Positions 2,365 through 51,343 of a stretch of DNA of 64,000 bases are shown piece after piece. Positions within the stretch are counted from its first letter, which is position 1, and each line of letters starts with the position of its first letter. Where the stretch lies: the sequence record ON529850.1. One strand, written 5' to 3'. The notes below the pieces were generated by a model. That model searched no databases. It was not told the origin of the DNA and saw only the letters and a program-made list of their open reading frames with translations. The translations under genes and the position numbers were made by a program.

Positions 2365-2779
2365 CTTCATCTCCATGATCGGGGTTTTCCGCCGCAATGG
2401 CGTCGAGGGCGGCGTCGAGTTTCTCACCTTCGGGGGCGGCGTCGATCCGCTCGCGAATACGTTCCTGCTGGGTGCGCCGCGTCTCGCGTTGTGCGGCGCG
2501 ACGTTCCTGCGAAGCCTGCGCCTGCTTGTCGGCCGTTTGCTGCTGAGCGGCGGCGTCCAGCTTACGCTCCAGCGCCTTGGCACGGTCTTCAGTATGGGCG
2601 AACGCCATCACCGCCATAACCAGGCCGGCGATAAACCAGAGCCGGATGTCCCCGGCGAGCTTGAATGCGCGGTCCGGCCCCAGGGTGAAATAGATCAGCG
2701 CGAAAAGCCCGCAGAGGCCTGCGATCGTCCACAAGGTGCCGGGGTTGAACAGAAGCGCCAGAAGGATGGAGCCCATCAA
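2246..2779 (-). CDS. Inner-membrane spanin (Rz-like)
   Basis: N-terminal hydrophobic helices followed by an Ala/Gln/Arg-rich coiled coil; position in the lysis cassette. Confidence 0.7.
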   Translation of the reverse strand: MMGSILLALLFNPGTLWTIAGLCGLFALIYFTLGPDRAFKLAGDIRLWFIAGLVMAVMAFAHTEDRAKALERKLDAAAQQQTADKQAQASQERRAAQRETRRTQQERIRERIDAAPEGEKLDAALDAIAAENPDHGDEDAVLDRRSQKAQPAPDGGAAADEPGADRVRKPSDVVVVP

Positions 2780-3246
2780 CGCCTCCCGCCGAAGTTAACC
2801 GGATGAATCCCAGGGATGTAGCGCGTTCCGTTATAGGTCAGGCATTGACGACGCATGCGCGGATCGAACGAAATATGAACCCACCAGGACCCGTTAGGCT
2901 TGCGCTCGTGGATCAGCTGGTCGAAGTTCAGTGAAGAGCGCTCGATCTCCCGGCAGATCGCCAAGGGATCGCCGAAGCTGGGGCAGACGAAGTCAATCGC
3001 CCAGCCCAGCGCGTGCGCCGAGTTGGACACGCCACCGACGGCGCGATTGACGGCCGGGTTGCGATAGGCGCTGGTGACGGTGATAGGGTTGTCTCCCAGG
3101 ACCCAACGCACCTGCTCCATATGCTGGGCGGTGCGGCGCAGGTTCTCCTGGTGCGCGGGGGTAGGCATGTTGTTGTTCTTCAGGCGGACGGCGGTGTCCG
3201 ACCGGATGAACTCAGCAAGGGTGAAATGGTCGGACAGTCGCATCAA
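2776..3246 (-). CDS. Peptidase M15A-family peptidoglycan peptidase (second endolysin)
   Basis: SAYRNPAVNRAVGG..NSAH, AIDF and WVHIS zinc-peptidase motifs. Confidence 0.88.
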   Translation of the reverse strand: MMRLSDHFTLAEFIRSDTAVRLKNNNMPTPAHQENLRRTAQHMEQVRWVLGDNPITVTSAYRNPAVNRAVGGVSNSAHALGWAIDFVCPSFGDPLAICREIERSSLNFDQLIHERKPNGSWWVHISFDPRMRRQCLTYNGTRYIPGIHPVNFGGRR

Positions 3247-3740
3247 TCCGTCACCTCCGTGGTTTCAGATTTGGTGTAATCAAGGGAAGGCATGGGCCGC
3301 CCTCCCCGATAGTCATTGCGGCCGCCGTATCCTCCGTAGCCTCCGCTGAAATCGTCATCGCCGCCCTTTCCCCCGCCGCCGCCGTAATCGACGTTGCGCG
3401 TGGTGGTGGGATCAACGTCCGGGTCGTCAGCGGTGGTGACCAGGTGCAGGCCCGCGCCGCCCGGTCCTCTCAGCGACAGGCCCTTGATGGTGCCCAGCAT
3501 GGAGATGATCACGAGGGCGAACAGGCCCAGGAAGATGTAGCCGTAGTTGATCAGGCCGCCGATGATCTGCCGCTGATTGTCCGTGTAGAAGACTGCGAAC
3601 ACCACCAGGATGATGATCATCCCGATGAACAGCGGGTAAAGCGAAACCCCCGCCATAATGATCGACACGCGCTGAAGATGATCCGGCCGATCGCACAAGA
3701 CGTCCATCGTCTGGCGCAGCCACAGGAAGAAACGCGACAT
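3243..3740 (-). CDS. Putative holin
   Basis: Two TM segments and a Gly/Asp-rich hydrophilic tail, between the two lytic enzymes; start MSRFFLW at 3740. Confidence 0.6.
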   Translation of the reverse strand: MSRFFLWLRQTMDVLCDRPDHLQRVSIIMAGVSLYPLFIGMIIILVVFAVFYTDNQRQIIGGLINYGYIFLGLFALVIISMLGTIKGLSLRGPGGAGLHLVTTADDPDVDPTTTRNVDYGGGGGKGGDDDFSGGYGGYGGRNDYRGGRPMPSLDYTKSETTEVTD

Positions 3741-3790
3741 GTTTTTGCGCACGCGCAGAGGCGACGGCGTGCCGGGCCAACCGCCGAACA

Positions 3791-4399
3791 TCAGCCGTAG
3801 CTCCAGGCCAAGGCGAGCGAGGACTTGGCGTCCTTGCCGCCATAGACCATCAGTTCAGCCAGTCGGCGACGATACAGCCCCAGGGTCCATCGGCCGTTGG
3901 AGTTCGACCAGCGCGCAAAAGCCAGCTGGATGTTGACGGGCGGCGCCTTGGCCTTCGACTGAGCCGCCAACCCCGACATGGAGATGGTGCCGACCTTACG
4001 CTCGCCGGCGGCGTGCAGGCGCGCAACCGCGCTCGTGCGGAACCCACTGACGCCGATGTTGAAGCACATCGACACCATGGCGTCGAATTCACATTGATAG
4101 GTGCGGGCGTCCGCAACGCGGTTGACCTCGGCGACATAGCGCGCCAGGTCCTGAGTCAGCAGCGCATCCGCCTCCGCCACCGTGATGCGCTGCTTGCCGA
4201 ACATCCGGTGCATCGCCTGACGCGCCAGTTCGTCGGAGCGGGCGCGGCCAAAGATGTCGTAGTCGATGATCTGGCCCGTCGGCGTCGTCAAGGCGTGACC
4301 CCAACCGACGGTGGCGACGTGGGCGGAGCAGTAATAGACCTCCGGCTCGAATTGCTCCGTGGACTGAATGAGCTTCAGCCCTTCAGGGGAAATCTGCAT
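3791..4399 (-). CDS. Endolysin, GH24 (phage lysozyme) family
   Basis: E...Y...A.VATVGWGH catalytic region; FDAMVSMCFNIG; LYRRRLAE. Confidence 0.9.
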   Translation of the reverse strand: MQISPEGLKLIQSTEQFEPEVYYCSAHVATVGWGHALTTPTGQIIDYDIFGRARSDELARQAMHRMFGKQRITVAEADALLTQDLARYVAEVNRVADARTYQCEFDAMVSMCFNIGVSGFRTSAVARLHAAGERKVGTISMSGLAAQSKAKAPPVNIQLAFARWSNSNGRWTLGLYRRRLAELMVYGGKDAKSSLALAWSYG

Positions 4400-4437: not shown

Positions 4438-4466
4438 ATTATGCCAGAACAGTTGACAACGGTCAA
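4438..4466 (-). promoter_or_regulatory. sigma70-type promoter of the lysis cassette
   Basis: TTGACC, 17 nt, CATAAT on the minus strand; overlaps the palindrome TTGAC-N4-GTCAA (4453-4466). Confidence 0.7.
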
Positions 4467-4474
4467 GGAATCGT

Positions 4475-5302
4475 CTATCGGCGCGCCGCCAGCGCGCGGT
4501 GCATTTCCAGCGCCTGGTTGAAACGCGGGAGCGCCAAACCCGTCCCGTAGGACCACAGATGATCCTGGTAGCGACGCCAACCGAACGATCCGATCTCGAT
4601 GCCGGCCAGCGTCAGATCGAACCCCTCTTCGGTCTTCTCGCTCTCCAGACCGTCCTCAGGCGCGCCCAGATGCACAGCCAAGGCGTAGGCGTCCGCCAGC
4701 ATCGTCTTCCACCCGATGTCGGTGATCGCTGTGTTGTCGTAAAGCTCGACCTTCATGAAGGTCGGGAAATGCAGCGCGTCGTAGTCATCCCCCATGCGGA
4801 AGCAGGGCGTGCAGGCGACGAATCGTCCTTTCCCCAGCTGCCCGGAAAGGTCCAGATGAAGGAAGGACTGTTCCGATGAGCCGACCAGGGCGCCCAGCCC
4901 TTCGACCCGCGCCGTGAACTCGGGCTTAGGGCAGGTGATGGCGACGCTTTCCTCCGACACCGCCCACGGCGCCTCGACATAGCTATAGCCGGCGTCCTTA
5001 TAGAAGGCGATCGCCTGACCCAACCAGGCGTAGTCGATAGGCGGCAGGGTCGGCAGATCACGATGCGTGTCCCGCAGCGGATGCTGCATCTGGGCTTCCG
5101 CCACCAACCACTCCGCCTTCGCCGCCAGTTCGGCGTTGTAGAACCAGGGCTTAGAGTGGTGTTTCACCAGATCACCCAGTTTCACCGTCGGGTGAAAATA
5201 GGCGGAAAAGATCGTCGCCTTCTCCCCTTCGGTGAAGTCCAGATCGTAAAGATAGAGCTCACGCCAGTCAGCGACGTCGACCATTGCGAAACGCCCTTTC
5301 AT
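4475..5302 (-). CDS. Class II aminoacyl-tRNA synthetase-like catalytic domain protein (no anticodon-binding domain)
   Basis: Motif-1-like FYKDAGYSYVEAP, motif-2-like TPCFR...HFPTFMKVEL, EIGSFG, motif-3-like GTGLALPRF. Confidence 0.75.
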   Translation of the reverse strand: MKGRFAMVDVADWRELYLYDLDFTEGEKATIFSAYFHPTVKLGDLVKHHSKPWFYNAELAAKAEWLVAEAQMQHPLRDTHRDLPTLPPIDYAWLGQAIAFYKDAGYSYVEAPWAVSEESVAITCPKPEFTARVEGLGALVGSSEQSFLHLDLSGQLGKGRFVACTPCFRMGDDYDALHFPTFMKVELYDNTAITDIGWKTMLADAYALAVHLGAPEDGLESEKTEEGFDLTLAGIEIGSFGWRRYQDHLWSYGTGLALPRFNQALEMHRALAARR

Positions 5303-5534
5303 TGATGTCCGCCATGATCTCCAGGTCTCGCATGATCAGGGTCGGATGATGGTGCGCCAGATAGGCGCGCATCGCGCCGTAGAGGTCCGCCAACTCCACC
5401 AGGGCCATCACACGGCAGTCCTGGGCGCAGGCGTCTATGAACTCGGCGCACTCTTCAGCGACCTTGGACGGTTGACCTAATTCGCCTTTGACGATGGGGG
5501 TCAGGTGATAGCCGGGGAGGAGTTCCGTATCCAT
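5268..5534 (-). CDS. MazG-like / all-alpha NTP pyrophosphohydrolase-like protein
   Basis: KVAEECAEF...ELADLYG acidic helical motif; GGAG RBS before MDTELL. Confidence 0.65.
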   Translation of the reverse strand: MDTELLPGYHLTPIVKGELGQPSKVAEECAEFIDACAQDCRVMALVELADLYGAMRAYLAHHHPTLIMRDLEIMADINERAFRNGRRR

Positions 5535-42622: not shown

Positions 42623-42706
42623 TGGCTCTTGCGGTAGGACTCGAACCTACAAGCCTTTCGGCGCTCGCTTAACAGGCGAGTGCGGCTACCATTTCGCCAC
42701 GCAAGA
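42623..42706 (-). tRNA. tRNA-Asn(GUU) with a type II variable arm
   Basis: Loop CUGUUAA; arm GCC-GAAA-GGC; G73; CCA. Confidence 0.85.
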
Positions 42707-42718
42707 TCAAAGAAAAGT

Positions 42719-42792
42719 TGGTTCAGGGGGAAGGAATCGAACCCTCATTTGCCGGACCAAAACCGGACGTAATACCGTTATACCACCCCTGA
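42719..42792 (-). tRNA. tRNA-Gln(UUG)
   Basis: Loop UUUUGGU; UCAGGGG/CCCCUGA; CCA. Confidence 0.88.
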
Positions 42793-42799
42793 ACAATAG

Positions 42800-42874
42800 T
42801 GGTAGCGGGTGAAGGAATCGAACCTTCGCGTATCGGTGTGTGATACCGATGCCTTACCACTTGGCGAACCCGCT
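42800..42874 (-). tRNA. tRNA-Val(CAC)
   Basis: Loop AUCACAC; body similar to Val(GAC) at 43035; CCA. Confidence 0.85.
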
Positions 42875-42957
42875 ATACTGAAAGGCGTATCTCCACCTCT
42901 CAGGTCGTCTATGCACTGGATCGCATAATCCTTCGTTATGCGCTCTACAGCATAAAA

Positions 42958-43032
42958 TGGTCCTCGAACTTGGAATCGAACCAAGATCATCCGATTATCG
43001 GTCGGGTGCACTAGCCGTTGTGCTATTCGAGG
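42958..43032 (-). tRNA. tRNA-Ile(GAU), C33
   Basis: Loop CCGAUAA; CCUCGAA/UUCGAGG; CCA. Confidence 0.85.
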
Positions 43033-43034
43033 GC

Positions 43035-43109
43035 TGGTAGCGGATGCAGGAATCGCACCTGCGCATGTCGGCGTGTCATACCGATGCCTTTCTACTTGGC
43101 TAATCCGCC
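43035..43109 (-). tRNA. tRNA-Val(GAC), T-loop UGCGAUU
   Basis: Loop AUGACAC; CCA. Confidence 0.82.
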
Positions 43110-43123
43110 ACACAGGAAAGGTG

Positions 43124-43198
43124 TGGCCCACTCGGGAGCGCTCGCATCTCCGTCTCGGGGATTTCACTCCCGCGCTACTCTATCTCAGCTACGAGTGG
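43124..43198 (-). tRNA. tRNA-Phe(GAA), atypical T-arm
   Basis: Loop GUGAAAU; CCACUCG/CGAGUGG; T-loop UGCGAGC; CCA. Confidence 0.72.
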
Positions 43199-43199
43199 A

Positions 43200-43282
43200 T
43201 GGTGGGTGGTTGAGGCATCGAACCTCTCCCGTTAGGCGCGGTGTTACAGACCGCTGTCGGAGCCAACCGACTTTAACCACCC
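43200..43282 (-). tRNA. tRNA-Tyr(GUA)
   Basis: Loop CUGUAAC; variable arm present; 5-bp D-stem; CCA. Confidence 0.85.
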
Positions 43283-43336
43283 GAAATTTTATCAGTCTCC
43301 GCCAGTCATGGCGATCTCCTGGGATGTGTAAAAGAA

Positions 43337-43366
43337 AAGGCCCGCCTGGATTTCCAGGCGGGCCTT
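43337..43366 (-). terminator. Intrinsic terminator directly upstream of the left tRNA operon (attenuator)
   Basis: ggcccgcctgg/ccaggcgggcc stem followed by ttttctttt on the minus strand. Confidence 0.85.
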
Positions 43367-43393
43367 CGAAGCTTGTTGCTGACTGTCTGAGGA

Positions 43394-43489
43394 CTATCCG
43401 CCCACCAAACCTTCGCACATGCACGAACGGCCCGCCCGGTAAAACCGGACGACGCGAATGTTCTGCACGTTTTGGCGATAGGTCATCAT
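43394..43489 (-). CDS. Putative leader peptide (31 aa, leaderless)
   Basis: MMTYRQNVQNIRVVRFYRAGRSCMCEGLVGG; ATG at the predicted TSS; contains GGCGGGCC, complementary to the terminator 5' arm. Confidence 0.6.
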   Translation of the reverse strand: MMTYRQNVQNIRVVRFYRAGRSCMCEGLVGG

Positions 43490-43496
43490 GGATTTG

Positions 43497-43525
43497 CTTT
43501 TACGCGATCTCTTTTATCGTGTCAA
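43497..43525 (-). promoter_or_regulatory. sigma70-like promoter of the left tRNA operon
   Basis: TTGACA, 17 nt, TAAAAG. Confidence 0.65.
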
Positions 43526-43716
43526 CTATTTCTTGGCGTGAATCCAAGATTTTTCAAAATCGGGCTCCCAAACGCCCCAATTCCCAACAGTCGGATAGTC
43601 CCGGTAACGCCATCCGCCGCAGTGCCGGCACATCGCTTCCAGCTGGAGACGTTCTTCGGGAAAGGGCTCGCAGTTGCCCCAAACAGCGCACGCGGGATCG
43701 CCTTCTTCACCGTCCG

Positions 43717-44259
43717 TCATCCGAGACGGACGCTCCGACGATGCGACGCGAACTTCTTCAAAAGCATGGAACGCTTCAACGAGGAGACCCGATCGATGTT
43801 GCGGATTCCGTCAAGATGATCCAGCTCATGCTGGATGCAGATCGCCTTGTATCCGGACCCGTAAAGGGTCTGGCGCTCACCCTGGACGTCGCTGTATTCG
43901 ACCGTCACCTCGCGGTGGCGGCTGACGTCGAAGAAGACGCCTGGCATGGACAGGCAGCCCTCCGGAAGCGACACCATGTCGTCCGACCGATCGATGATGA
44001 CGGGATTGATCAGCACCAGCTTGGCAAGGCCCGGCAACATGCTTTGGGTCGGCAGCGGACCATTGGGAAGATCAAGCATGGTGAACATCCGCACCGGAAC
44101 GCCCACCTGAACCGCCGCCAGGCCCGCGCCGTCCGCCGTCAGCATGGTGTGCAGCATGTCGTGCGCCAGCGTGAGGAGGTCTTCATCGATCTCGGTGATT
44201 TCGGTCGAGACCTGACGCATCAACGGATCAGTGCACGGCAGGATTTGACGAAGCGCCAT
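43717..44259 (-). CDS. def: Peptide deformylase
   Basis: All three motifs: GAGLAAVQVG, EGCLS, QHELDHLDG. Confidence 0.96.
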   Translation of the reverse strand: MALRQILPCTDPLMRQVSTEITEIDEDLLTLAHDMLHTMLTADGAGLAAVQVGVPVRMFTMLDLPNGPLPTQSMLPGLAKLVLINPVIIDRSDDMVSLPEGCLSMPGVFFDVSRHREVTVEYSDVQGERQTLYGSGYKAICIQHELDHLDGIRNIDRVSSLKRSMLLKKFASHRRSVRLG

Positions 44260-44498
44260 CAGGTCAAGGTCCCCATGCCGCCGGCAGTGGTGGTGCGACC
44301 ATCCCGCCAGCGCCCCACCAGACTGACCAAATGGTCCGAGCGCATCTCCAGCTCCTCCAGGACGTCAAGCGCTTGCATCAAAGCCACGCGCGCGTCTTCC
44401 AGGCCGATGTTCTGGAGCTGGACGAGACGGCCCCCGACCATGACCTGATAGCCATGATACGGGGGCGTGCCGGCCGATGCGTTATCGGCGTCGGGCAT
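44259..44498 (-). CDS. Hypothetical protein
   Basis: Stop/start coupled to both neighbours. Confidence 0.6.
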   Translation of the reverse strand: MPDADNASAGTPPYHGYQVMVGGRLVQLQNIGLEDARVALMQALDVLEELEMRSDHLVSLVGRWRDGRTTTAGGMGTLT

Positions 44499-44788
44499 CA
44501 GACTTCACCGAGCGCCGACATATACAGGTCCAGGATGGCGTCTTCTTCCTGACGCTTGGCCTTGTCCTGCTTACGCAGGCGGATGACCTTACGCAGGATT
44601 TTGACGTCGTAGCCCTCGCCCTTGGCCTCGGCGAAGACCTCCTTCATGTCCGCCATGACGGCCTGCTTATCCTCTTCGAGTCGCTCCAGGCGCTCGATGA
44701 TGGAACGCAGACGACCCTGGGCCGAAGAGGTCAGAGCGTCGGCGTTCGTGAAGGTGGTGTCGCCGTCGGTCGTGGTGGGGTGAATCAT
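44498..44788 (-). CDS. gapR: GapR (DUF2312/UPF0335) nucleoid-associated protein
   Basis: LRSIIER.ERLEE.K....D.KEVFAEAK..GYD.KILR.VI.LRK.D...R.EE.A.LDLY..ALG. Confidence 0.93.
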   Translation of the reverse strand: MIHPTTTDGDTTFTNADALTSSAQGRLRSIIERLERLEEDKQAVMADMKEVFAEAKGEGYDVKILRKVIRLRKQDKAKRQEEDAILDLYMSALGEV

Positions 44789-44809
44789 TCTGTTCTCACA
44801 GGCGTTGCG

Positions 44810-45034
44810 TCACTGAGTGACAAGGAAATGAAGAATCGCCAGAAGATCGCGATCGACACGCGGGTCTTGCGCCTTCTGTTCGATGATGCGCAGGGCAGCC
44901 TTTCGCCGTGCGACCTGTCGGCCCACAACTATATTGCCATGCTGTTCTATGGCGTTTTCCAACTCTTCCGGGTCGACATAGGTGGAAATCGGATCGCCAT
45001 ATTTGCGGGCGCCGGGAAAGCGAAACTCAGTCAT
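44810..45034 (-). CDS. Hypothetical protein
   Basis: Start MTEFRF at 45034 with GGAGGAGG RBS. Confidence 0.6.
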   Translation of the reverse strand: MTEFRFPGARKYGDPISTYVDPEELENAIEQHGNIVVGRQVARRKAALRIIEQKAQDPRVDRDLLAILHFLVTQ

Positions 45035-45176
45035 CCGTCCCACCCTCCTCCGCCACAAATCGTCCGTCGACGAAGGCTCCGACACGGGTGACGCCGTTCA
45101 GGCGCTGAACCAGCTGCCCGTCCTCAATCCAGTAGTAGGGGATGCCCCACTCCTCATGGAAAAGAACGTCGGTCAC
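45027..45176 (-). CDS. Small hypothetical protein (49 aa)
   Basis: Not in the track. GTGA overlap with the upstream stop; TDVLFHEEWGIPYYWIEDGQLVQRLNGVTRVGAFVDGRFVAEEGGTDD. Confidence 0.6.
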   Translation of the reverse strand: MTDVLFHEEWGIPYYWIEDGQLVQRLNGVTRVGAFVDGRFVAEEGGTDD

Positions 45177-45475
45177 GCTTCACCGGGGCGTGCGGCGTAG
45201 GGCGCGAAGGTGAAGTGATTGGGCGCCGCGACCGGCGGCAGATCATCGCCCGTGATCGGGCGGATGAAAAAGCGCATCAGCGCATTGTCGACGTTCTGCC
45301 AGGACGCCGCCTTCCATTCATCGCGAGCCGCTTCCCAGGTGGGAAAGACGCCCCGAACCACGACGGCCTGCGGATTACGAAACGCCGCCTGGAACGTCTC
45401 CTTGTCTCGGGCGGGGTCCGTGACGGCCAAGTCCGCCATCTCTCCACCGTAGACAGAATAACCGCAGACGCACAT
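45173..45475 (-). CDS. DUF4170-like protein
   Basis: VYGGE...D......VV.GVFP.W.AA...W.A.....VDNA.MRFFI pattern typical of alphaproteobacteria. Confidence 0.72.
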   Translation of the reverse strand: MCVCGYSVYGGEMADLAVTDPARDKETFQAAFRNPQAVVVRGVFPTWEAARDEWKAASWQNVDNALMRFFIRPITGDDLPPVAAPNHFTFAPYAARPGEA

Positions 45476-46239
45476 CAGCCGATCTCCACGATCAAATTGG
45501 GGTCGAAGTTCGGGTTCAACTCGTGCCCGATATAGCCGCGCGGATTGGTCAGCACGCGCGTCTTGCCGATCTGGTAGTCGCTGGAATCGTGCATGTGCCC
45601 GTGAACCCACAGGTCCGGTTCATACTCCAGGATCAGCGGCTCCAGGCGGGACGCATAGCAGGGGTTGAGTTCGCTGCCCCGATAACGGGGATGGCTGGAC
45701 CGCTCCGAGGGCGCATGGTGGGTCACCACCACGGTCGGACCGTCATGCGACAGGCGCAGTTGCTCACGCAAGAAGAAGACGCTGCGCGTATGCAGCGACA
45801 AAACCGCTTCAGGGGTGAGCAGGCGCATCGGTTCGGTTTCGATCTGCCGGTAGTCCGTCATGCCGCGCCTGGCCGCCATCATCGACAGATACTGGGTGCC
45901 GTAGAGATTGAAATCCGTCCAAAGGGTCGCGCCCAGGAACCGCACGCCGTCGATCACGAGCGCCTCGTCATCCAGAACGTGAACCGAAGACCCCAGCTCG
46001 ACCGCCTTGGCCTTCATTTTCTCGATGTGGCGTTTGATCCGACGCTTGCCGTAGAACTCGTGATTGCCGGGAACGTAGACGACCGGAACGCCAGGAAAAT
46101 GGCGATCCGCCCAGATCACGCCCACAACACCCGTGGCGGCGTCGCCAGCCAGGACCAGCACATCGCAAGGCGCCGGCGTGTAGTCGCGGCCCATGCCGCC
46201 GAACTCCAGGTGCAGGTCGCTCAGAATGTTGATGCGCAC
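45475..46239 (-). CDS. Calcineurin-like metallophosphoesterase
   Basis: SDLH, LAGD, GNHE, VTHH, WVHGH.H, NPRGY motifs. Confidence 0.93.
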   Translation of the reverse strand: MRINILSDLHLEFGGMGRDYTPAPCDVLVLAGDAATGVVGVIWADRHFPGVPVVYVPGNHEFYGKRRIKRHIEKMKAKAVELGSSVHVLDDEALVIDGVRFLGATLWTDFNLYGTQYLSMMAARRGMTDYRQIETEPMRLLTPEAVLSLHTRSVFFLREQLRLSHDGPTVVVTHHAPSERSSHPRYRGSELNPCYASRLEPLILEYEPDLWVHGHMHDSSDYQIGKTRVLTNPRGYIGHELNPNFDPNLIVEIG

Positions 46240-46256
46240 GCGTATCCCCGTAAAAC

Positions 46257-46375
46257 TGGAGCGGGTGGGAAGACTTGAACTTCCGCCTCCGGGTTAGCGA
46301 CCCGGCACTCCTGATCTCGGCCGAGACCCGCAACCCGGTTCGGCCGAACCTGCTGCGCCCTAGAGCTTCACCCGC
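46257..46375 (-). tRNA. 119-nt tRNA-like RNA: Gly-type acceptor, GCU (Ser) anticodon, 52-nt D-loop insertion
   Basis: GCGGGUG/CACCCGC, U73, CCA; CCGGG-UCGCUAA-CCCGG; GGAAG-UUCAAGU-CUUCC; short variable loop. Confidence 0.72.
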
Positions 46376-46379
46376 ATAA

Positions 46380-46610
46380 GGCGGCAGGAGTTTTAAAGGT
46401 GATGCGTCACCGGGCAAGCCCCCTGCCAGAAACCCCGTCTCCGCTTTTGTGAGGTCCAGAGACGAACGACCCTTCAAAGGCTCACATGGCACGACGTCGT
46501 CTCACGCGCTCCAGGCGTAGTCGCCCGAAACCGCAAGCCCGAGAGGTGGTGCGCGATGGTATCGCCTTCCCGAGGCGACGCCTTGCGACGCCGCGATCTT
46601 GTGTGGGGAT
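46380..46610 (-). ncRNA. Candidate structured RNA (~230 nt) upstream of the 119-nt tRNA
   Basis: Follows terminator 46647-46674 and TTGACG (46638-46633); helices UCGCC/GGCGA, UGUGAG/CUCACA, GGCAGGGG/CUCCUGCC, GGUGA/UCACC. Confidence 0.45.
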
Positions 46611-46646
46611 TACTGGCACTGTTCGACACGGGCGTCAACAAAGAAA

Positions 46647-46674
46647 AACGCCCCGGCGTTTCGGCCGGGGCGTT
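46647..46674 (-). terminator. Intrinsic terminator
   Basis: aacgccccggc/gccggggcgtt followed by tttcttt on the minus strand. Confidence 0.85.
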
Positions 46675-46676
46675 CT

Positions 46677-46994
46677 TCAGAGGTTCATCATCCACTGCTT
46701 GCGGTAGCGCGTGAAATCCTTCCAGGATTTGCCGGCGCGGCGGGACGCCATGATGTCGTCCCAGGAGGACGGCAGATGCTTCCGGTTCCCCCGCACGGAG
46801 ACGACACGATCATGGACGTCACCGGCGTTTCGACGGCGTTCCTGCATGGTGCGCGGATGCCGGAAATACTGCCGCCAGACGTGGCGGAACTCGCGGCAAC
46901 GCAGAGGATCGCCCTGGACCCCGCCGTAGTAATAGGTCCAGCAGCCGATCCACAGAAATCCGTGGTGGGTGATGCGTTGGAATTGGGGCTTCAA
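46677..46994 (-). CDS. Hypothetical phage protein
   Basis: R.P.T.QERR...R..R..LPSSWDD.......KSWK...RKQW; followed by a terminator. Confidence 0.75.
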   Translation of the reverse strand: MKPQFQRITHHGFLWIGCWTYYYGGVQGDPLRCREFRHVWRQYFRHPRTMQERRRNAGDVHDRVVSVRGNRKHLPSSWDDIMASRRAGKSWKDFTRYRKQWMMNL

Positions 46995-47097
46995 AACAGC
47001 CTCCTGTCAGGTTGATTACCTAACGGGTGCTGTGCTCCAGGTAGAATTTGATCATCATGGCCCTATGATACGGCAAGCTGGACCGTTGGTCCAGAAA

Positions 47098-47186
47098 TGG
47101 CGGATGGGGCAGGGATCGAACCCGCGTAACCCTCTCGGGTGTCGACCGCTTAGCAAGCGGCTGCCTTACCTCTCGGCCACCCATCC
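47098..47186 (-). tRNA. tRNA-Ser(GCU)
   Basis: Loop UUGCUAA; long variable arm; G73; CCA. Confidence 0.93.
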
Positions 47187-47193
47187 GTGGGTG

Positions 47194-47278
47194 TGGCGGT
47201 GAACCAGGGAATCGAACCCTCAACCTTGCGGTCGGCTACGGTTTTCAAGGCCGCTTGTCCCCATGGACGCTGCTCACC
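47194..47278 (-). tRNA. tRNA-Ser(UGA), allo-tRNA-like D-arm and 4-bp T-stem
   Basis: Loop CUUGAAA; D-arm GUCC-AUGG-GGAC; AGGG-UUCGAUU-CCCU; CCA. Confidence 0.82.
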
Positions 47279-47285
47279 ATAAAGG

Positions 47286-47375
47286 TGGCGGACGGCGCGC
47301 GATTCGAACGCGCGGACCCTTGCGGGCCGCCTGCTTTCCGGGCAGGTGCCTTAAGCCAGACTCAGCCAGCCGTCC
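47286..47375 (-). tRNA. tRNA-Ser(GGA), C33
   Basis: Loop CCGGAAA; long variable arm; G73; CCA. Confidence 0.9.
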
Positions 47376-47380
47376 GTTGT

Positions 47381-47598
47381 TGGTGGAGGCGAGGGGATTC
47401 GAACCCCCGTAGACGCCGAACCCCCGCATTACCAGGGGCCGATCTTCGGTTTAGAACGCGTGTGCCGCTCTGACCATCTTCCGCAGGCCAGGTGGTCTAT
47501 CGTAACGACCCCGTCGATCGGTTGCCTCTGCGCCCCGGTTTTACCCGGACCGTTATCCTGTTCCACGGTGCTCATGCCGAAACCCGAGCGACGCCCCC
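47381..47598 (-). ncRNA. ssrA: Compact one-piece tmRNA-like RNA (218 nt)
   Basis: 5' GGGGGCG pairs with 3' CGCCUCC including G3.U70; A73; CCA; T-arm GGGG-UUCGAAU-CCCC; GGGUUUCGGC D-analogue; no anticodon arm. Confidence 0.78.
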
Positions 47599-47607
47599 GT
47601 GAAGAAA

Positions 47608-47695
47608 TGGAGGATGGTGTGGGATTCGAACCCACGGAACCTTGCGGTCCTCCGGCTTTCGAAACCGGTGCGATCGGCCACTCCGCCAACCATCC
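47608..47695 (-). tRNA. tRNA-Ser(CGA)
   Basis: Loop UUCGAAA; long variable arm; U73; CCA. Confidence 0.9.
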
Positions 47696-47702
47696 ATATC
47701 AG

Positions 47703-47888
47703 TCAGGCGGCCGCCGGACTGTAGTTGTCGATGTCGTCGACCCGGATCGCCGTTCCCGCCGCGATTTGGCGGTCGGCGCTCAACAGGTCGGCGACCAGGT
47801 CCTCCGCCGAGACGTCGCCGCCGGAAGTGGCGAACTTGACGTTCACCACTCCATTGTCGTACATCTCGGCGATCGCTGAGCGATCCAT
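47703..47888 (-). CDS. Small hypothetical protein (61 aa) inside the tRNA array
   Basis: AAAGG RBS; acidic, protein-like composition; fills the gap between two tRNAs. Confidence 0.65.
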   Translation of the reverse strand: MDRSAIAEMYDNGVVNVKFATSGGDVSAEDLVADLLSADRQIAAGTAIRVDDIDNYSPAAA

Positions 47889-47921
47889 GGCATGCCTTTC
47901 TGCCGGCGTCGCCGGCGGTTA

Positions 47922-47997
47922 TGGTGGAGATGAGGGGAGTCGAACCCCTGACATCCTGCTTGCAAGGCAGGTGCTCTACCAACTGAGCTACATCCCC
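47922..47997 (-). tRNA. tRNA-Ala(UGC)
   Basis: Canonical; G3.U70; loop CUUGCAA; CCA. Confidence 0.96.
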
Positions 47998-48027
47998 AAG
48001 ATGGGTGTCAGTTTTCCTGACAATTGT

Positions 48028-48103
48028 TGGGCCTGGCACTCGGATTCGAACCGAGCCATGCGGCTCCACAAACCGCCGCCTCCACCGCAGAGGCTTTACC
48101 AGG
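48028..48103 (-). tRNA. tRNA-His(GUG)
   Basis: Loop UUGUGGA; C73; no encoded G-1; CCA. Confidence 0.87.
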
Positions 48104-48105
48104 AT

Positions 48106-48193
48106 TGGTCGCAGCGACAGGAATCGAACCTGCCCGGCCTTTCGGCCACCAGCCTCTCATGCTGGCGCGTCTACCAGACTCCGCCACGCTGCG
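48106..48193 (-). tRNA. tRNA-Leu(GAG)
   Basis: Loop AUGAGAG; variable arm; A73; CCA. Confidence 0.92.
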
Positions 48194-48202
48194 ATCAAAA
48201 GT

Positions 48203-48288
48203 TGGTGCCGGTGGTGGGATTCGCACCCACCCGCCACTAAGGACACCAGTTTCTGAAACTGGCGCGTCTACTGCTTCGCCACACCGGC
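48203..48288 (-). tRNA. tRNA-Leu(CAG), T-loop UGCGAAU
   Basis: Loop UUCAGAA; variable arm; A73; CCA. Confidence 0.87.
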
Positions 48289-48298
48289 AATGATGTGT

Positions 48299-48384
48299 TG
48301 GTGCCCGCCCCCGGACTCGAACCGGGACGCCACGAGGGCCACGCCTTTTGAGGACGCTGCGTCTACCTTTCCGTCCAGACGGGC
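48299..48384 (-). tRNA. tRNA-Leu(CAA)
   Basis: Loop CUCAAAA; variable arm; A73; CCA. Confidence 0.88.
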
Positions 48385-48393
48385 TTGAGAAGA

Positions 48394-48479
48394 TGGTGCG
48401 GGCGAGAGGATTCGAACCTCCCCGGCACAAGGCCACGGGCATCTGAAGCCCGCGCGGCTACCAGCTTCGCCACGCCCGC
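48394..48479 (-). tRNA. tRNA-Leu(CAG), second divergent copy
   Basis: Loop UUCAGAU; canonical T-loop; CCA. Confidence 0.92.
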
Positions 48480-48483
48480 ACTT

Positions 48484-48565
48484 TGGAGAACCACGGTGGA
48501 GTCGAACCACTTGCGCCTGGATTAAAAGCCCAATCCCGGCCACCCGGATTTAACGCTCGTGGTCC
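48484..48565 (-). tRNA. tRNA-Lys(UUU), (8/4)-type fold
   Basis: GGACCACG/CGUGGUUC; GUGG-UUCGACU-CCAC; 9-nt linker before a tetraloop D-arm; loop CUUUUAA; CCA. Confidence 0.75.
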
Positions 48566-48580
48566 TCGATTCTCGAATAT

Positions 48581-48667
48581 TGGAGGATGTGGTGGGACTC
48601 GAACCCACGATGGACTTTCGTCAGAGGATTAAGAGCCCTCCCCTCTCGCCGCTGAGGTGACACATCC
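48581..48667 (-). tRNA. tRNA-Lys(CUU) with a variable arm
   Basis: Loop CUCUUAA; arm GAC-GAAA-GUC; U73; CCA. Confidence 0.85.
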
Positions 48668-48703
48668 GTTTAAACTGTATAGCGTCTCCATGAAGACTGT
48701 TGA

Positions 48704-48774
48704 TGGTGCCAGCGGAGCGGGATCGCACCCTCCTCCAACCACTACGAAAGGCTGGTCCTCCTAGAGGCGCCGGC
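48704..48774 (-). tRNA. tRNA-Thr(CGU), atypical (mini D-arm, extended anticodon stem)
   Basis: GCCGGCG/CGCUGGC; CCUC-UAG-GAGG; CCAGCC/GGUUGG around UUCGUAG; A73; CCA. Confidence 0.62.
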
Positions 48775-48782
48775 GTTGTTCT

Positions 48783-48853
48783 TGGTGCCAAGAGTGGGAG
48801 TCAAACCCACCCTGAACCCCTACCACGGGCTCGTCCGGTCACCCGGCCTTGGC
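48783..48853 (-). tRNA. tRNA-Thr(GGU), atypical (mini D-arm, 6-bp anticodon stem)
   Basis: GCCAAGG/UCUUGGC; CCGG-GUGA-CCGG; GAGCCC-GUGGUAG-GGGUUC; 3-nt variable loop; CCA. Confidence 0.68.
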
Positions 48854-48860
48854 GTTATCC

Positions 48861-48935
48861 TGGTCAGAGCGGGAGGTCTCGAACCTCCGACCCCTGCCTT
48901 CCCGAGACAGTGCGCTACCCCTGCGCCACACTCTG
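48861..48935 (-). tRNA. tRNA-Pro(GGG), C33 and A37
   Basis: C1-G72, A73; loop UCGGGAA; CCA. Confidence 0.87.
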
Positions 48936-48938
48936 ATC

Positions 48939-49013
48939 TGGTCTGGGCCGAGGGGATCGAACCCCCGTCATCCGGCTCCCAAAGCCGGCGCCTAACCGCT
49001 CGGCCAGACCCAG
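48939..49013 (-). tRNA. tRNA-Pro(UGG)
   Basis: Loop UUUGGGA; CCA. Confidence 0.93.
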
Positions 49014-49028
49014 ATTGTTATTAAGAAA

Positions 49029-49106
49029 TGGTCTGCGCATCAGGATTTGAACCTGAGACCCCCACGCTCCGAAGGTGGTACTCTGACCAGGCTGAGCTAT
49101 ACGCAG
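49029..49106 (-). tRNA. tRNA-Pro(CGG)
   Basis: Loop UUCGGAG; CCA. Confidence 0.92.
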
Positions 49107-49119
49107 ATGTGAAAAACGA

Positions 49120-49150
49120 AAAGGCCCCAGAGGCGTTGCGCCTGGGGCCT
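49120..49150 (-). terminator. Intrinsic terminator directly upstream of the central tRNA operon (attenuator)
   Basis: aggccccag/ctggggcct stem followed by tttcgttttt on the minus strand. Confidence 0.85.
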
Positions 49151-49222
49151 AAAACAGCTGCTGATTTGGGAGTTCAGCAGGTGATCGGCCCCTCGGGCGC
49201 CTCACCTGCTGTAAGGAAGACC

Positions 49223-49360
49223 TTAGATGGTCTCCGTTGCAGAGGTGACGCCACCGGTGGTGGGGGATTTCGGCGACAGCGTGGCCGGCGCATAGGCGAG
49301 CGTCGACAGCGCCGAAGCGGCGGTCGAATGAAGGCTCAGCTTGTGCGACAACTTGGTCAC
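49223..49360 (-). CDS. Putative leader peptide (45 aa, Ser/Thr/Ala-rich)
   Basis: AAGGA RBS, GTG start; MTKLSHKLSLHSTAASALSTLAYAPATLSPKSPTTGGVTSATETI. Confidence 0.55.
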   Translation of the reverse strand: MTKLSHKLSLHSTAASALSTLAYAPATLSPKSPTTGGVTSATETI

Positions 49361-49408
49361 GAGAGAAATCCTTAGAAGGAAGGGCGTCGAAACGCGATTG
49401 AAGCTTCA

Positions 49409-49437
49409 TCTTTACAGCAAGCTTTTTGGCTTGTCAA
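49409..49437 (-). promoter_or_regulatory. sigma70-like promoter of the central tRNA operon
   Basis: TTGACA, 17 nt, TAAAGA. Confidence 0.65.
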
Positions 49438-49518
49438 GCAAAGATCGAAATTTATTTCGAGGGCTGCCCCTCGCGACGATTACTGCCAGATTTCCTGACA
49501 CACGTCAACCTGGAAAGT

Positions 49519-49559
49519 GACGCGCGCGGCCTCGGGGGAGCGGGAAGGCCGCGCGCGTC
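49519..49559 (-). terminator. 14-bp hairpin, probable terminator
   Basis: gacgcgcgcggcct/aggccgcgcgcgtc followed by acttt. Confidence 0.65.
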
Positions 49560-49562
49560 GGG

Positions 49563-49850
49563 TCACACCGGCCTCGGGGACGGGGCGGCCGGATCGGGAG
49601 CGCCGCAGCGGTCGGGAACGCCGCGACGATTCTTCGGGAGCCGCTCGCGCAGTGGCGGGACCGGAACCGGTCCATAGATCACCTCGACGACGCGGCGCCG
49701 GATTTTTCGGGTAGTCGGGAGAGGGACGCCGCGCCGAATCAATTCAGCGCCGGCCGCCGAACTCGAAAGCGATCCTGACAGATAGATGTCCAGAAGCGCC
49801 GAAGTCGGCATGGCGCGCATACGCTGCGCGCGGTGGGGATTATGGACCAT
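49563..49850 (-). CDS. Hypothetical protein
   Basis: GGAGAG RBS; ends at the hairpin. Confidence 0.5.
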   Translation of the reverse strand: MVHNPHRAQRMRAMPTSALLDIYLSGSLSSSAAGAELIRRGVPLPTTRKIRRRVVEVIYGPVPVPPLRERLPKNRRGVPDRCGAPDPAAPSPRPV

Positions 49851-49949
49851 AGGGTCTCTCCATGCTGGGTCTAGCCCAGGCGGAGGACACGCCTAATGGT
49901 TCAGACGCTGTATCGCGTCCATCCGCCTGGGTTAATCAGCGGAGAGGAA

Positions 49950-50144
49950 TCAGGGAATGTCGGTCTTGGTCGGCGCGAACACCGAAACGACCGCGTCGAG
50001 CGCCTTCTTGAGGCGGCTGGGACGCTGGGTCAACGCCGAGGCGCAGACCTTCTTGATCTCGTCGTGGGTCAAGGAGCCTGGGTCGCGCAATCCGCGTGCG
50101 GCGATCGACGCAACAGAGGCGGAGGTGACTTCCTGGCGAGACAT
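49950..50144 (-). CDS. Small hypothetical phage protein
   Basis: TS..VASIAA..L.DP......K.V.ASALTQ. Confidence 0.7.
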   Translation of the reverse strand: MSRQEVTSASVASIAARGLRDPGSLTHDEIKKVCASALTQRPSRLKKALDAVVSVFAPTKTDIP

Positions 50145-50160
50145 GACGTGAAGAAATCCT

Positions 50161-50235
50161 TGGCGAGCCTAACGGGAGTTGAACCCGTCTTTCCAGCGTG
50201 ACAGGCTGGTGTCCTAACCGATAGACGATAGGCCC
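50161..50235 (-). tRNA. tRNA-Asp(GUC)
   Basis: Loop CUGUCAC; G73; CCA. Confidence 0.93.
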
Positions 50236-50263
50236 TTTCCAGGGATGTCGGTCTAGGAGGTGT

Positions 50264-50341
50264 TGGCACAGCCGACGGGGGTCGAACCCGCATTATCCTG
50301 CTTGAAAGGCAGGTTTCCTAGTCCATTTAGAAGACGGCTGC
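50264..50341 (-). tRNA. tRNA-Glu(UUC)
   Basis: Loop CUUUCAA; G73; CCA. Confidence 0.92.
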
Positions 50342-50375
50342 ACAGAACACGAGCCGACCTCTACGAGTACCGCTT

Positions 50376-50441
50376 TTAGGCGGTGCGCGTATCTCGGCCC
50401 GTGAAGGCCTCTCGCTCTCGAATGGACGTCAGGTAGGTCAT
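50376..50441 (-). CDS. Putative leader peptide (21 aa, leaderless)
   Basis: MTYLTSIREREAFTGRDTRTA; ATG 8 nt after the -10 box. Confidence 0.45.
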   Translation of the reverse strand: MTYLTSIREREAFTGRDTRTA

Positions 50442-50448
50442 AACGGGA

Positions 50449-50477
50449 CTATTAACAGAATCGCTTTTCGGTGTCAA
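50449..50477 (-). promoter_or_regulatory. sigma70-like promoter of the Glu/Asp tRNA unit
   Basis: TTGACA, 17 nt, TAATAG. Confidence 0.65.
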
Positions 50478-50647
50478 GAACGACGTCGATCTTTTCGATG
50501 TTTTTCTTCGGGGACGTCCTCGCCGGGCGCTTCCTCAGCGTCCCAGGCCATCATCAAGGCGGCGGCGAAGGCTGGTCCCATGTCCGCTTCCAGCTGGCGC
50601 AAGGCCCGTTCGTTGGACCGTAGGAAAGCCTCGCTGTATTCGAGCAT
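50474..50647 (-). CDS. Small hypothetical protein
   Basis: GAGG RBS before MLEYSEAF; the track extends this ORF to 50752. Confidence 0.5.
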   Translation of the reverse strand: MLEYSEAFLRSNERALRQLEADMGPAFAAALMMAWDAEEAPGEDVPEEKHRKDRRRS

Positions 50648-50779
50648 GTCGACCTCAAATGAACAGGGGCCGACTTCAGCGCGCGCCGTCTGCCGGTTGC
50701 GCCTGGGCGGAAGCAGCGCACCAGTCCTGCTCGACTGGCCCAGCCCCTCCATCTCTATTTGTCAGGTTTGACGTCAAAC

Positions 50780-51092
50780 GTCAATGCGGAAATGCGGCGG
50801 TTACAGCTTCAACCAGCCCTTCAGGGCCTGTGGGTCTTTCGGGCGTCCTGCCCCGCCGCGCCTACTACGACGCCTTTTTCGGCCCCGGCGAACCGGAGAG
50901 GGTAAAAATCGACGGGTGACCGCTACCGGCCTCGCCTGCTGGCCCGTCCCAGCGCCCAACCTCACCGCGCAGCGCCCCTGTGGGCATATGGCCTTCCCGT
51001 CCGAAGACAGACGCCATGCGGTGGTGGCAGGGCCGCTTGCCCTTACACCCGCACGGCCTGGGCGGGGAGAGAGGCAGAGGCGAACCCCGGAA
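50780..51092 (-). ncRNA. Candidate structured RNA (~310 nt) downstream of tRNA-Gly(UCC)
   Basis: Long-range CCCCGCC/GGCGGGG helix, cUUCGg hairpin, GCCC-UGAA-GGGC; shares a 13-mer with the 1201-1782 RNA. Confidence 0.5.
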
Positions 51093-51095
51093 TGA

Positions 51096-51170
51096 TGGAG
51101 CGACCGGCGGGGATCGAACCCGCGCATGTCAGGGTGGAAACCTGATGCCTTTCCGCTTGGCTACGGTCGC
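51096..51170 (-). tRNA. tRNA-Gly(UCC)
   Basis: Loop UUUCCAC; U73; CCA. Confidence 0.93.
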
Positions 51171-51180
51171 GAAAGTAAAG

Positions 51181-51257
51181 TGGAGCGTCCAGTGAGAATC
51201 GAACTCACCCCCCGCGCGTTGGCAACGCGCTGTACCCACCAATAATACGTTGGACGC
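51181..51257 (-). tRNA. tRNA-Gly(GCC)
   Basis: Loop UUGCCAA; U73; CCA. Confidence 0.9.
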
Positions 51258-51267
51258 AAAGTAAATA

Positions 51268-51343
51268 TGGCGCCGGACAAGGGACTCGAACCCTTCACAC
51301 ACAGTTTTGGAGACCGCTGCTCTACCCCATGAGCTAGACCGAC
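51268..51343 (-). tRNA. tRNA-Trp(CCA)
   Basis: Loop CUCCAAA; G73; CCA. Confidence 0.92.

Follow-up and report, generated by a model that had tools for sequence, protein, structure and literature searches.

Truncated paralogues of the aminoacyl-tRNA synthetases have acquired unexpected chemistries, among them the lysylation of elongation factor P (EF-P), the charging of carrier proteins and the synthesis of asparagine. Bll0957, EpmA/GenX, AsnA and the archaeal AS-AR are catalytic-core-only class II enzymes that proceed through an acyl-adenylate to non-tRNA acceptors; to our knowledge, no truncated class II paralogue described to date is coupled to a MazG-like enzyme. In MazZ with PurZ, and in gp56 with gp42 of T4, a small all-α nucleoside triphosphate (NTP) pyrophosphatase is found beside a nucleotide-modifying enzyme, and the PurZ modification uses an amino acid and ATP. 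Another MazG-like protein, Atd1 of Pectobacterium phage PcCB7V, was chosen from open reading frames (ORFs) within four genes of a phage nucleotidyltransferase (NTase); it hydrolyses ppGpp (Km ~50 µM), not ribonucleoside triphosphates (rNTPs) or cyclic di-GMP, lessens the toxicity of TIR-STING and retron-TIR, and was treated as a stand-alone enzyme with no mention of a synthetase-like partner (Ho et al., bioRxiv 10.1101/2022.06.09.495361). Here we analyse a stretch of 64,000 nucleotides (the window) of record ON529850.1, the giant Brevundimonas phage vB_BpoS-Gurke (321.5 kb, Dolichocephalovirinae), in which two overlapping genes, GURKE_03390 and GURKE_03380, encode a MazG/HisE-like protein and a protein with a catalytic core like that of seryl-tRNA synthetase (SerRS). 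The two genes form one two-part system.

GURKE_03390 (5268..5534, minus strand) encodes an 88-residue protein resembling the MazG/HisE-type all-α NTP pyrophosphohydrolases, and has a Shine-Dalgarno sequence, GGAGG, just 5' of its ATG at 5534. GURKE_03380 encodes the class II synthetase-like protein on the same strand, with a maximal ORF of 275 residues (4475..5302, stop included). Its start in GenBank is the second ATG (5284), giving 269 residues; homologues of the larger protein likewise start at the position of this residue, M7, and the true product is probably the 269-residue form. The genes overlap by 17 nt (5268..5284), or by 35 nt if the first ATG of the larger ORF is used, and the 17-nt overlap is consistent with translational coupling. 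Both genes are labelled "hypothetical protein" in GenBank. Because the smaller protein matches phrog_6408 (E 1e-32), and the larger matches phrog_4806 (E 5e-39) and retrieves 1,421 relatives in an exhaustive search of representatives clustered at 50% identity (E ≤ 1e-3), we regard both ORFs as real genes and not as chance ORFs of a GC-rich genome. An earlier note on this DNA had reported overlapping genes for proteins of 88 and 275 residues, and both ORFs are indeed present on the minus strand.

Since single-sequence searches of Pfam and the PDB gave no match to the larger protein, its class II kinship is seen only by profiles and structure. A profile of 79 family sequences retrieved SerRS from the PDB first (E 1e-6), followed by PylRS and AspRS, and PF00152 is matched weakly by 45 of the 79. 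The AlphaFold model has a mean predicted local distance difference test (pLDDT) score of 92.7 and a predicted template modelling (pTM) score of 0.80. An exhaustive structural comparison of this model with VIA-align revealed that its seven best matches are all SerRS (Z 17.7-19.0), with root mean square deviation values of about 3 Å over 188-195 residues. HisZ and HisRS (Z 16-17.3), PylRS (17.1) and Bll0957 (15.6) rank after SerRS, and archaeal AsnA (13.3) and GenX (13.1) score below it as well. The 50 best matches all have the class II fold and comprise synthetases together with the paralogues HisZ, AsnA, GenX and the pol-gamma accessory subunit. Foldseek gives a probability of 1.00 to PylRS and SerRS, and comparison with the ESM Atlas likewise gives class II, in agreement with the fold that the earlier note had assigned.

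The SerRS-like catalytic core occupies residues about 86-275 (4478..5047, minus strand). Most of the 1,421 relatives, which are mostly viral, are stand-alone proteins of 180-200 residues that match residues ~88-270 only, bare cores of about 185 residues. The three class II motifs reported in the earlier note are all recognizable: motif 1 includes P112, motif 2 has FR at R169, and motif 3 reads GTGxAxPR with R260. The core also carries an SxE motif (S142, E144), C167, F182/K184/E186, E236/S239 and T254. In the 79 sequences S142, E144, Q145, P166, C167, R169, F182, K184, E186, E236, G238, S239, G241, T254, A257, P259 and R260 are invariant, and P112 is kept in at least 90%.

For comparison we used a genuine SerRS of 431 residues that is encoded beside one archaeal locus. 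The invariant residues of the core align with its TSE, CFR, F.KVE, E.GS and T..A..R motifs, so that core and SerRS have in common (T/S)xE, TPCFR, F.KVE, E.GS and GT..A..R. Within these, E144, E186 and T254 (in TxE, F.K.E and motif 3, respectively) are invariant and aligned with the SerRS positions. We take the invariant residues to be the positions that in the Thermus thermophilus enzyme hold the amino group and hydroxyl of serine, the ATP and the metal. The equivalents of E186 and T254 there are presumably Glu279 and Thr380, both of which contact the hydroxyl of serine. The constant C-terminal offset of 126 to SerRS in VIA-align fits the equivalence of T254 and R260 with Thr380 and Arg386. 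Because the serine- and ATP-contact positions of SerRS are invariant, serine is probably the substrate amino acid, and the core looks like a catalytically competent, working enzyme of the seryl-adenylate type. The adenylation of an amino acid, which the earlier note had suggested, is therefore plausible.

The core differs from SerRS, a class IIa enzyme, in size, with about 185 residues compared to about 300, and in the elements by which SerRS holds its tRNA. The N-terminal coiled-coil tRNA arm is absent, as the structural matches begin at model residue ~78 (residues ~150-230 of SerRS) and the first ~180 residues of the 431-residue SerRS have no counterpart in the family alignment. The motif-2 loop is six residues shorter than in that enzyme, and the stretch that in SerRS connects the E.GS strand to motif 3 has been lost. 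Neither the structure comparison nor the SerRS alignment shows an anticodon-binding domain, in keeping with the catalytic-core-only homologue of the earlier note. Because the arm, the six loop residues and the segment before motif 3 are missing, the core looks unable to hold a tRNA as SerRS does. We are confident that the ligase part is a SerRS derivative whose contact with tRNA, if any, is not made as in SerRS. With respect to the other class II paralogues, HisZ, the HisRS-like regulatory subunit of ATP phosphoribosyltransferase, is a strong structural match; unlike HisZ, the core has no HisG partner and retains the catalytic arginines, and its sequence is SerRS-like and not HisRS-like. The annotated phage regions and the viral loci revealed no EF-P context, no gene annotated as a carrier protein and no small gene that recurs next to the pair, although no dedicated PP-binding search was made.

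The N-terminal ~80 residues of the larger protein (residues about 7-85; 5048..5284) are predicted by AlphaFold to form three helices with a pLDDT of about 90. Pfam has no match for this region of the Gurke protein, and BLASTP finds no similarity between it and the N-termini of the Caulobacter phage homologues. Seven of these Caulobacter phage relatives match PF03118, a domain like the C-terminal domain of the RNA polymerase α subunit (alphaCTD), with a best E of 1.7e-9. In a profile-profile alignment with hhalign, the Gurke-type N-terminus matches the PF03118-matching group at 94% (E 1.4e-7, 67 columns), and on this basis we read the Gurke N-terminus as a diverged alphaCTD-like helical domain in which the second hairpin (NIGRK-type) has been replaced. 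The earlier note had called this region, of about 85 residues, novel; that holds as far as BLASTP can see, and not in the sense of a wholly novel domain.

The 88-residue protein matches PF01503 (PRA-PH) with an E of 0.0088 and 16.9 bits, below the cut-off of 21.3. Among 33 family members, 24 match PF01503 and four match PF03819, and PRA-PH/HisE is the best match in both Pfam and the PDB, sub-threshold throughout. Y9, H10, K24, E27, E28, E31, E47 and D50 are invariant in the 33 sequences and include the metal-binding EExxE...ExxD motif, seen as EExxE...ELAD by the earlier note; the positions matching K24 and this motif are also invariant in 29 fusion proteins, and the MazG-like domain is helical in the model of one fusion. 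The invariant N-terminal G-Y-H segment is not familiar to us from MazG or HisE. On these grounds the small protein is accepted as a divergent member of the all-α NTP pyrophosphohydrolase (MazG/HisE) superfamily, as the earlier note had proposed, and its conserved residues make it look catalytically competent.

The two genes travel together. The phage records that tblastn retrieved for the two proteins number 276 and 265 and have an identical taxon profile, and the hosts of these phages include Escherichia, Acinetobacter, Caulobacter, Pectobacterium, Cronobacter and Brevundimonas. Of 80 IMG/VR loci (some of them near-duplicates) that were retrieved with the core alone, 79 encode the partner on the strand of the core and no more than ~1.3 kb away, and the two genes mostly abut or overlap. 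Both gene orders occur among these loci and two of them are fusions, and no other neighbour family is present in more than 12 of the 80. A collection of species-representative genomes contains a further 28 loci, mostly from the Candidate Phyla Radiation (CPR; Saccharibacteria, WWE3, Spechtbacterales) and from DPANN archaea. Both parts are present in 26 of these cellular loci, 13 of which encode them as a single core-then-MazG protein of ~270 residues. Fusions thus number 15 among the viral and cellular loci, to which gp131 of Microcystis phage Ma-LMM01 is added, and the model of a natural fusion is of high quality (pLDDT 91.5, pTM 0.86) and has an ordered linker. These counts bear out the two-gene module of the earlier note and decisively contradict the idea that other phages lack the linkage. 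The partnership also sets the core apart from SerRS, as it is always partnered with a MazG/HisE-like protein. In one DPANN phylum the fusion is an accessory and not a housekeeping trait, because it is present in only 3 of 201 sampled genomes.

A connection to a described enzyme is provided by phage PcCB7V. The Gurke 88-residue protein and PcCB7V QQG33500.1 share 47% identity (E 2e-17), both belong to phrog_6408, and the EExxE...ExxD motifs are found in both. QQG33500.1 is located two genes from the pol-beta/RlaP NTase QQG33502.1, while no NTase is detectable within four genes of QQG33552.1, the other MazG protein of this phage. Because QQG33500.1 fits the NTase-proximity rule by which Atd1 was chosen and QQG33552.1 does not, QQG33500.1 is the protein that best fits the description of Atd1, which probably belongs to the GURKE_03390 family, with the odds well in favour. 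With a distance of five genes from the NTase, the synthetase-like gene of PcCB7V falls beyond the four-gene sampling window of Ho et al. The statement of the earlier note that MazG-like enzymes clear alarmones fits this probable orthologue, a reported ppGpp hydrolase. QQG33502.1 itself (L005:3368-4486), of a kind reported to make cyclic dinucleotides, matches the Pfam family RlaP (E 6e-18), a pol-beta family of RNA repair pathways, and is encoded in a block with a CCA-adding enzyme and a peptidyl-tRNA hydrolase (Pth).

Taken together, these data suggest a mechanism in which the two genes would encode the halves of one conserved enzyme system. The SerRS-derived core would bind ATP together with a small amino acid, for which serine is the most probable candidate, form the acyl-adenylate and pass the activated group to an acceptor. 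This acceptor would not be a tRNA, because the core has lost every element by which SerRS holds one. The HisE/MazG-type half would strip pyrophosphate from a nucleotide, which is ppGpp in the case of the probable orthologue Atd1. Most likely, the two halves would form a complex that works on one shared nucleotide-type substrate, with one cleaving a pyrophosphate bond and the other attaching a serine-like group or activating the substrate by adenylation. In phages, such a system would serve to modify or eliminate a nucleotide signal of the host, for example (p)ppGpp, by which infection would otherwise be limited. The nucleotide-related surroundings of the pair, between frd and td in a T4-like phage and beside P-loop kinase genes (some with CYTH) and a small radical SAM gene in CPR and DPANN genomes, speak for this reading. 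We estimate a probability of about 45% that the two halves act jointly on a nucleotide polyphosphate and thereby blunt a host signal of this kind, with the acceptor and the role as the main sources of uncertainty. A more specific form, in which the core ligates serine, or adenylylates, onto the nucleotide polyphosphate processed by its partner, so that an amino acid-nucleotide conjugate is made or destroyed for signalling between phage and host (or symbiont and host), is tentative and rather unlikely to be correct in full.

Several observations weigh against joint action on a nucleotide polyphosphate. The chemistry of the ligase half is read from its sequence and predicted fold, and no reaction is known to us in which serine becomes linked to ppGpp or a nucleotide like it. 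Every member of the small-protein family scores below the Pfam cut-off for MazG/HisE, and the sole relevant PDB profile match, to HisE (2a7w), has an E of only 0.48. The physical complex is suggested solely by the natural fusions and by the pTM of a fusion model, and Atd1 is placed in this family by gene position and not by accession number. The tail and lysis surroundings of the Gurke pair carry no functional clue. The remaining two observations lead towards RNA. Near the pair in Vequintavirinae are a CCA-adding enzyme, Pth and an RlaP NTase, a set that points to RNA or tRNA ends, and one MazG-like protein has a C-terminal RF-1/GGQ domain of the peptidyl-tRNA hydrolase type (L067:5306-5989; PF00472, E 9e-5, below the cut-off).

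These last observations would be accounted for if the pair acted at the 3' ends of tRNAs. There, the core would dock the CCA terminus, either to charge a phage or host tRNA with serine or simply to hold the end, and its MazG-like partner would clear away a 3'-pyrophosphate that blocks the end. The toxSAS/CapRel toxins add such a group to tRNA, and in chemical terms it resembles the 3'-diphosphate of ppGpp. The 3'-OH of A76 is where class II synthetases act, 9-10 of the 80 viral loci contain genes for RNA ligase and metallophosphoesterase, the alphaCTD-like, nucleic-acid-binding domain is present in the proteins from Caulobacter and Brevundimonas phages, and ARAGORN finds 24 tRNA genes in several arrays in the window (42623-51343, minus strand), all of which would be in line with such a role. 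However, the core has no SerRS tRNA arm, and the loop of motif 2, the element that reads the acceptor stem, is shortened by six residues. Most of the 1,421 clusters are bare cores with no RNA-binding domain, and a non-selective serylation of tRNA would be harmful. Genes for tRNAs and tRNA enzymes are not consistently linked to the pair, the tRNA arrays of Gurke being about 38 kb away, and the neighbours of the cellular module are kinase, CYTH and radical S-adenosylmethionine (SAM) genes and not tRNA genes. Activity at tRNA 3' ends is, on balance, unlikely, and the charging of phage tRNAs that the earlier note had envisaged finds no support in the core.

An improbable alternative is that the pair carries out the first two steps of a modified-nucleotide pathway, in which the MazG-like protein would convert an NTP or deoxynucleoside triphosphate to the monophosphate and the ligase would join an amino acid to it, to yield a modified base, a cofactor or a nucleoside metabolite. 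T4 and the PurZ/MazZ phages offer the precedent of a MazG-like NTPase beside an enzyme that modifies a nucleoside monophosphate; it is an analogy only, as the partner enzyme in those systems has another fold and modified DNA is not in evidence for phages with the pair. The genomic context agrees with nucleotide metabolism in several phages: the pair is located between frd and td and near the ribonucleotide reductase (RNR) genes in the T4-like Morganella phage MP1, nrdC and nrdH are near it in Acinetobacter phages, and genes for RNR and deoxynucleoside monophosphate kinase recur near it in viral contigs. A conserved gene cluster surrounds the pair or fusion in DPANN and CPR genomes; its other members encode a divergent TrmB-like regulator, a P-loop kinase-like protein of the AAA_28 family and a small radical SAM protein. 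The AAA_28 proteins are often fused to a CYTH triphosphatase (triphosphate tunnel) domain; the AAA_28-CYTH gene is directly upstream of the core-MazG fusion at two loci (L103:4925-5977 and L106:1624-2697) and downstream of the separate pair at another (L093:5366-6454). A radical SAM gene of ~225 residues overlaps the end of the fusion in seven DPANN/CPR loci, including L103, and shows generic likeness to MoaA, viperin, NrdG and QueE, with no assignable type. The group of AAA_28-CYTH, radical SAM and fusion genes looks like an uncharacterised small operon.

The phage loci do not follow this arrangement, as the kinase, radical SAM and regulator families were found in none of the 80 viral loci. 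Because no further enzyme, whether kinase, transferase or special polymerase, is consistently linked to the pair in phages, a whole modification pathway is unlikely there. Campylobacter phage CP220, whose DNA is presumably 7-deazaguanine-modified, does not have the pair. In addition, rNTPs are reportedly not hydrolysed by Atd1 (bioRxiv 10.1101/2022.06.09.495361).

The proposal that the MazG-like protein is the sole working enzyme, an anti-defence alarmone hydrolase, and that the synthetase-like protein is a non-catalytic regulator or scaffold sensing serine or ATP, as HisZ is for HisG, draws on the protection from TIR-STING and retron-TIR and the hydrolysis of ppGpp in vitro by Atd1 alone (bioRxiv 10.1101/2022.06.09.495361) and on HisZ, a known regulatory subunit derived from a synthetase paralogue, as a structural neighbour at Z 17.3, but is very unlikely given that the ATP- and substrate-contact residues are all invariant in 79 diverse sequences, which is unusual for a pseudo-enzyme, and that strict co-inheritance and fusions imply a need for both halves.

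The idea that DPANN genomes carrying the fusion do without (p)ppGpp enzymes, which would have spoken against ppGpp as the substrate, failed, as RelA/SpoT-domain proteins are encoded in three of five such genomes. In the DPANN phylum of locus L100, RelA/SpoT-domain proteins of about 620-700 residues are present in 99 of the 201 sampled genomes, and the presence of the fusion, found in three of the 201, gives no usable correlation with them either way. Several genomes of that phylum also have shorter matches, of about 250-370 residues, that resemble small alarmone synthetases; (p)ppGpp enzymes had been expected to be rare in archaea. A link to 7-deazaguanine through the radical SAM neighbour was rejected on the generic character of its likeness and the absence of the pair from CP220, and NARP3 (PnuC with NadR), tried as a link to the AAA_28 neighbours, proved to be unrelated. 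The 431-residue SerRS used above is encoded by a canonical gene beside the regulator and the core-MazG fusion in one Nanoarchaeota metagenome-assembled genome (L097:3798-5093).

A possible additional part of the system is found in huge-phage contigs and at one locus of a cellular metagenome-assembled genome (L093), where a cupin-like domain of ~180 residues is fused to the MazG-like part or encoded between the two genes (L010:5418-5978, L011:5175-5744 and six other loci). The domain corresponds to phrog_4784, is weakly cysteine-dioxygenase-like, has invariant H38, H54-D55-H56, C91 and H129, and has no sequence match in the PDB. This domain is a candidate third component of the system.

The Gurke pair is flanked on one side by tail or lectin-like genes and on the other by a lysis cassette of lysozyme, holin, peptidase and spanin genes. 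The lysozyme gene (3791-4399) is directly downstream of the pair, followed by genes for a Gly-rich holin-like membrane protein (3243-3791) and the peptidase (2776-3246), all on the minus strand. A promoter-like site on the same strand (TTGACC, a 17-nt spacer and CATAAT, with TG; 4438-4466) lies between the stop codon of the synthetase-like gene and the lysozyme gene, and the lysis cassette may therefore have its own promoter. In CcrColossus, the pair likewise precedes the lysis cassette, with the same gene order as in Gurke.

No description of a synthetase-like and MazG pair in phages was found in the literature, and the pair is not mentioned in the jumbo-phage survey or in the phiCbK genome paper. 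The superfamilies of the parts are already known and the small protein has probably already been named; no paper was found on the obligate pairing and fusion or on the SerRS-like nature of the core. The core family is among the smallest class II cores and is tied to a pyrophosphatase whose probable orthologue counts as an anti-defence gene. Database entries for the core read "histidyl tRNA synthetase" and "seryl-tRNA synthetase"; these labels mislead and inflate claims of phage-encoded synthetases. The natural fusions of ~270 residues, such as Ma-LMM01 gp131, offer a compact target for biochemistry and structure determination. If the pair is one enzyme, the view of Atd1 as a stand-alone ppGpp hydrolase would be incomplete, and tools that annotate anti-defence genes would be scoring half a system. 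Should a serine-nucleotide conjugate prove to be involved, the family would represent a new functional class of aminoacyl-tRNA synthetase paralogues, and the mechanism of Atd1 would have to be revised.

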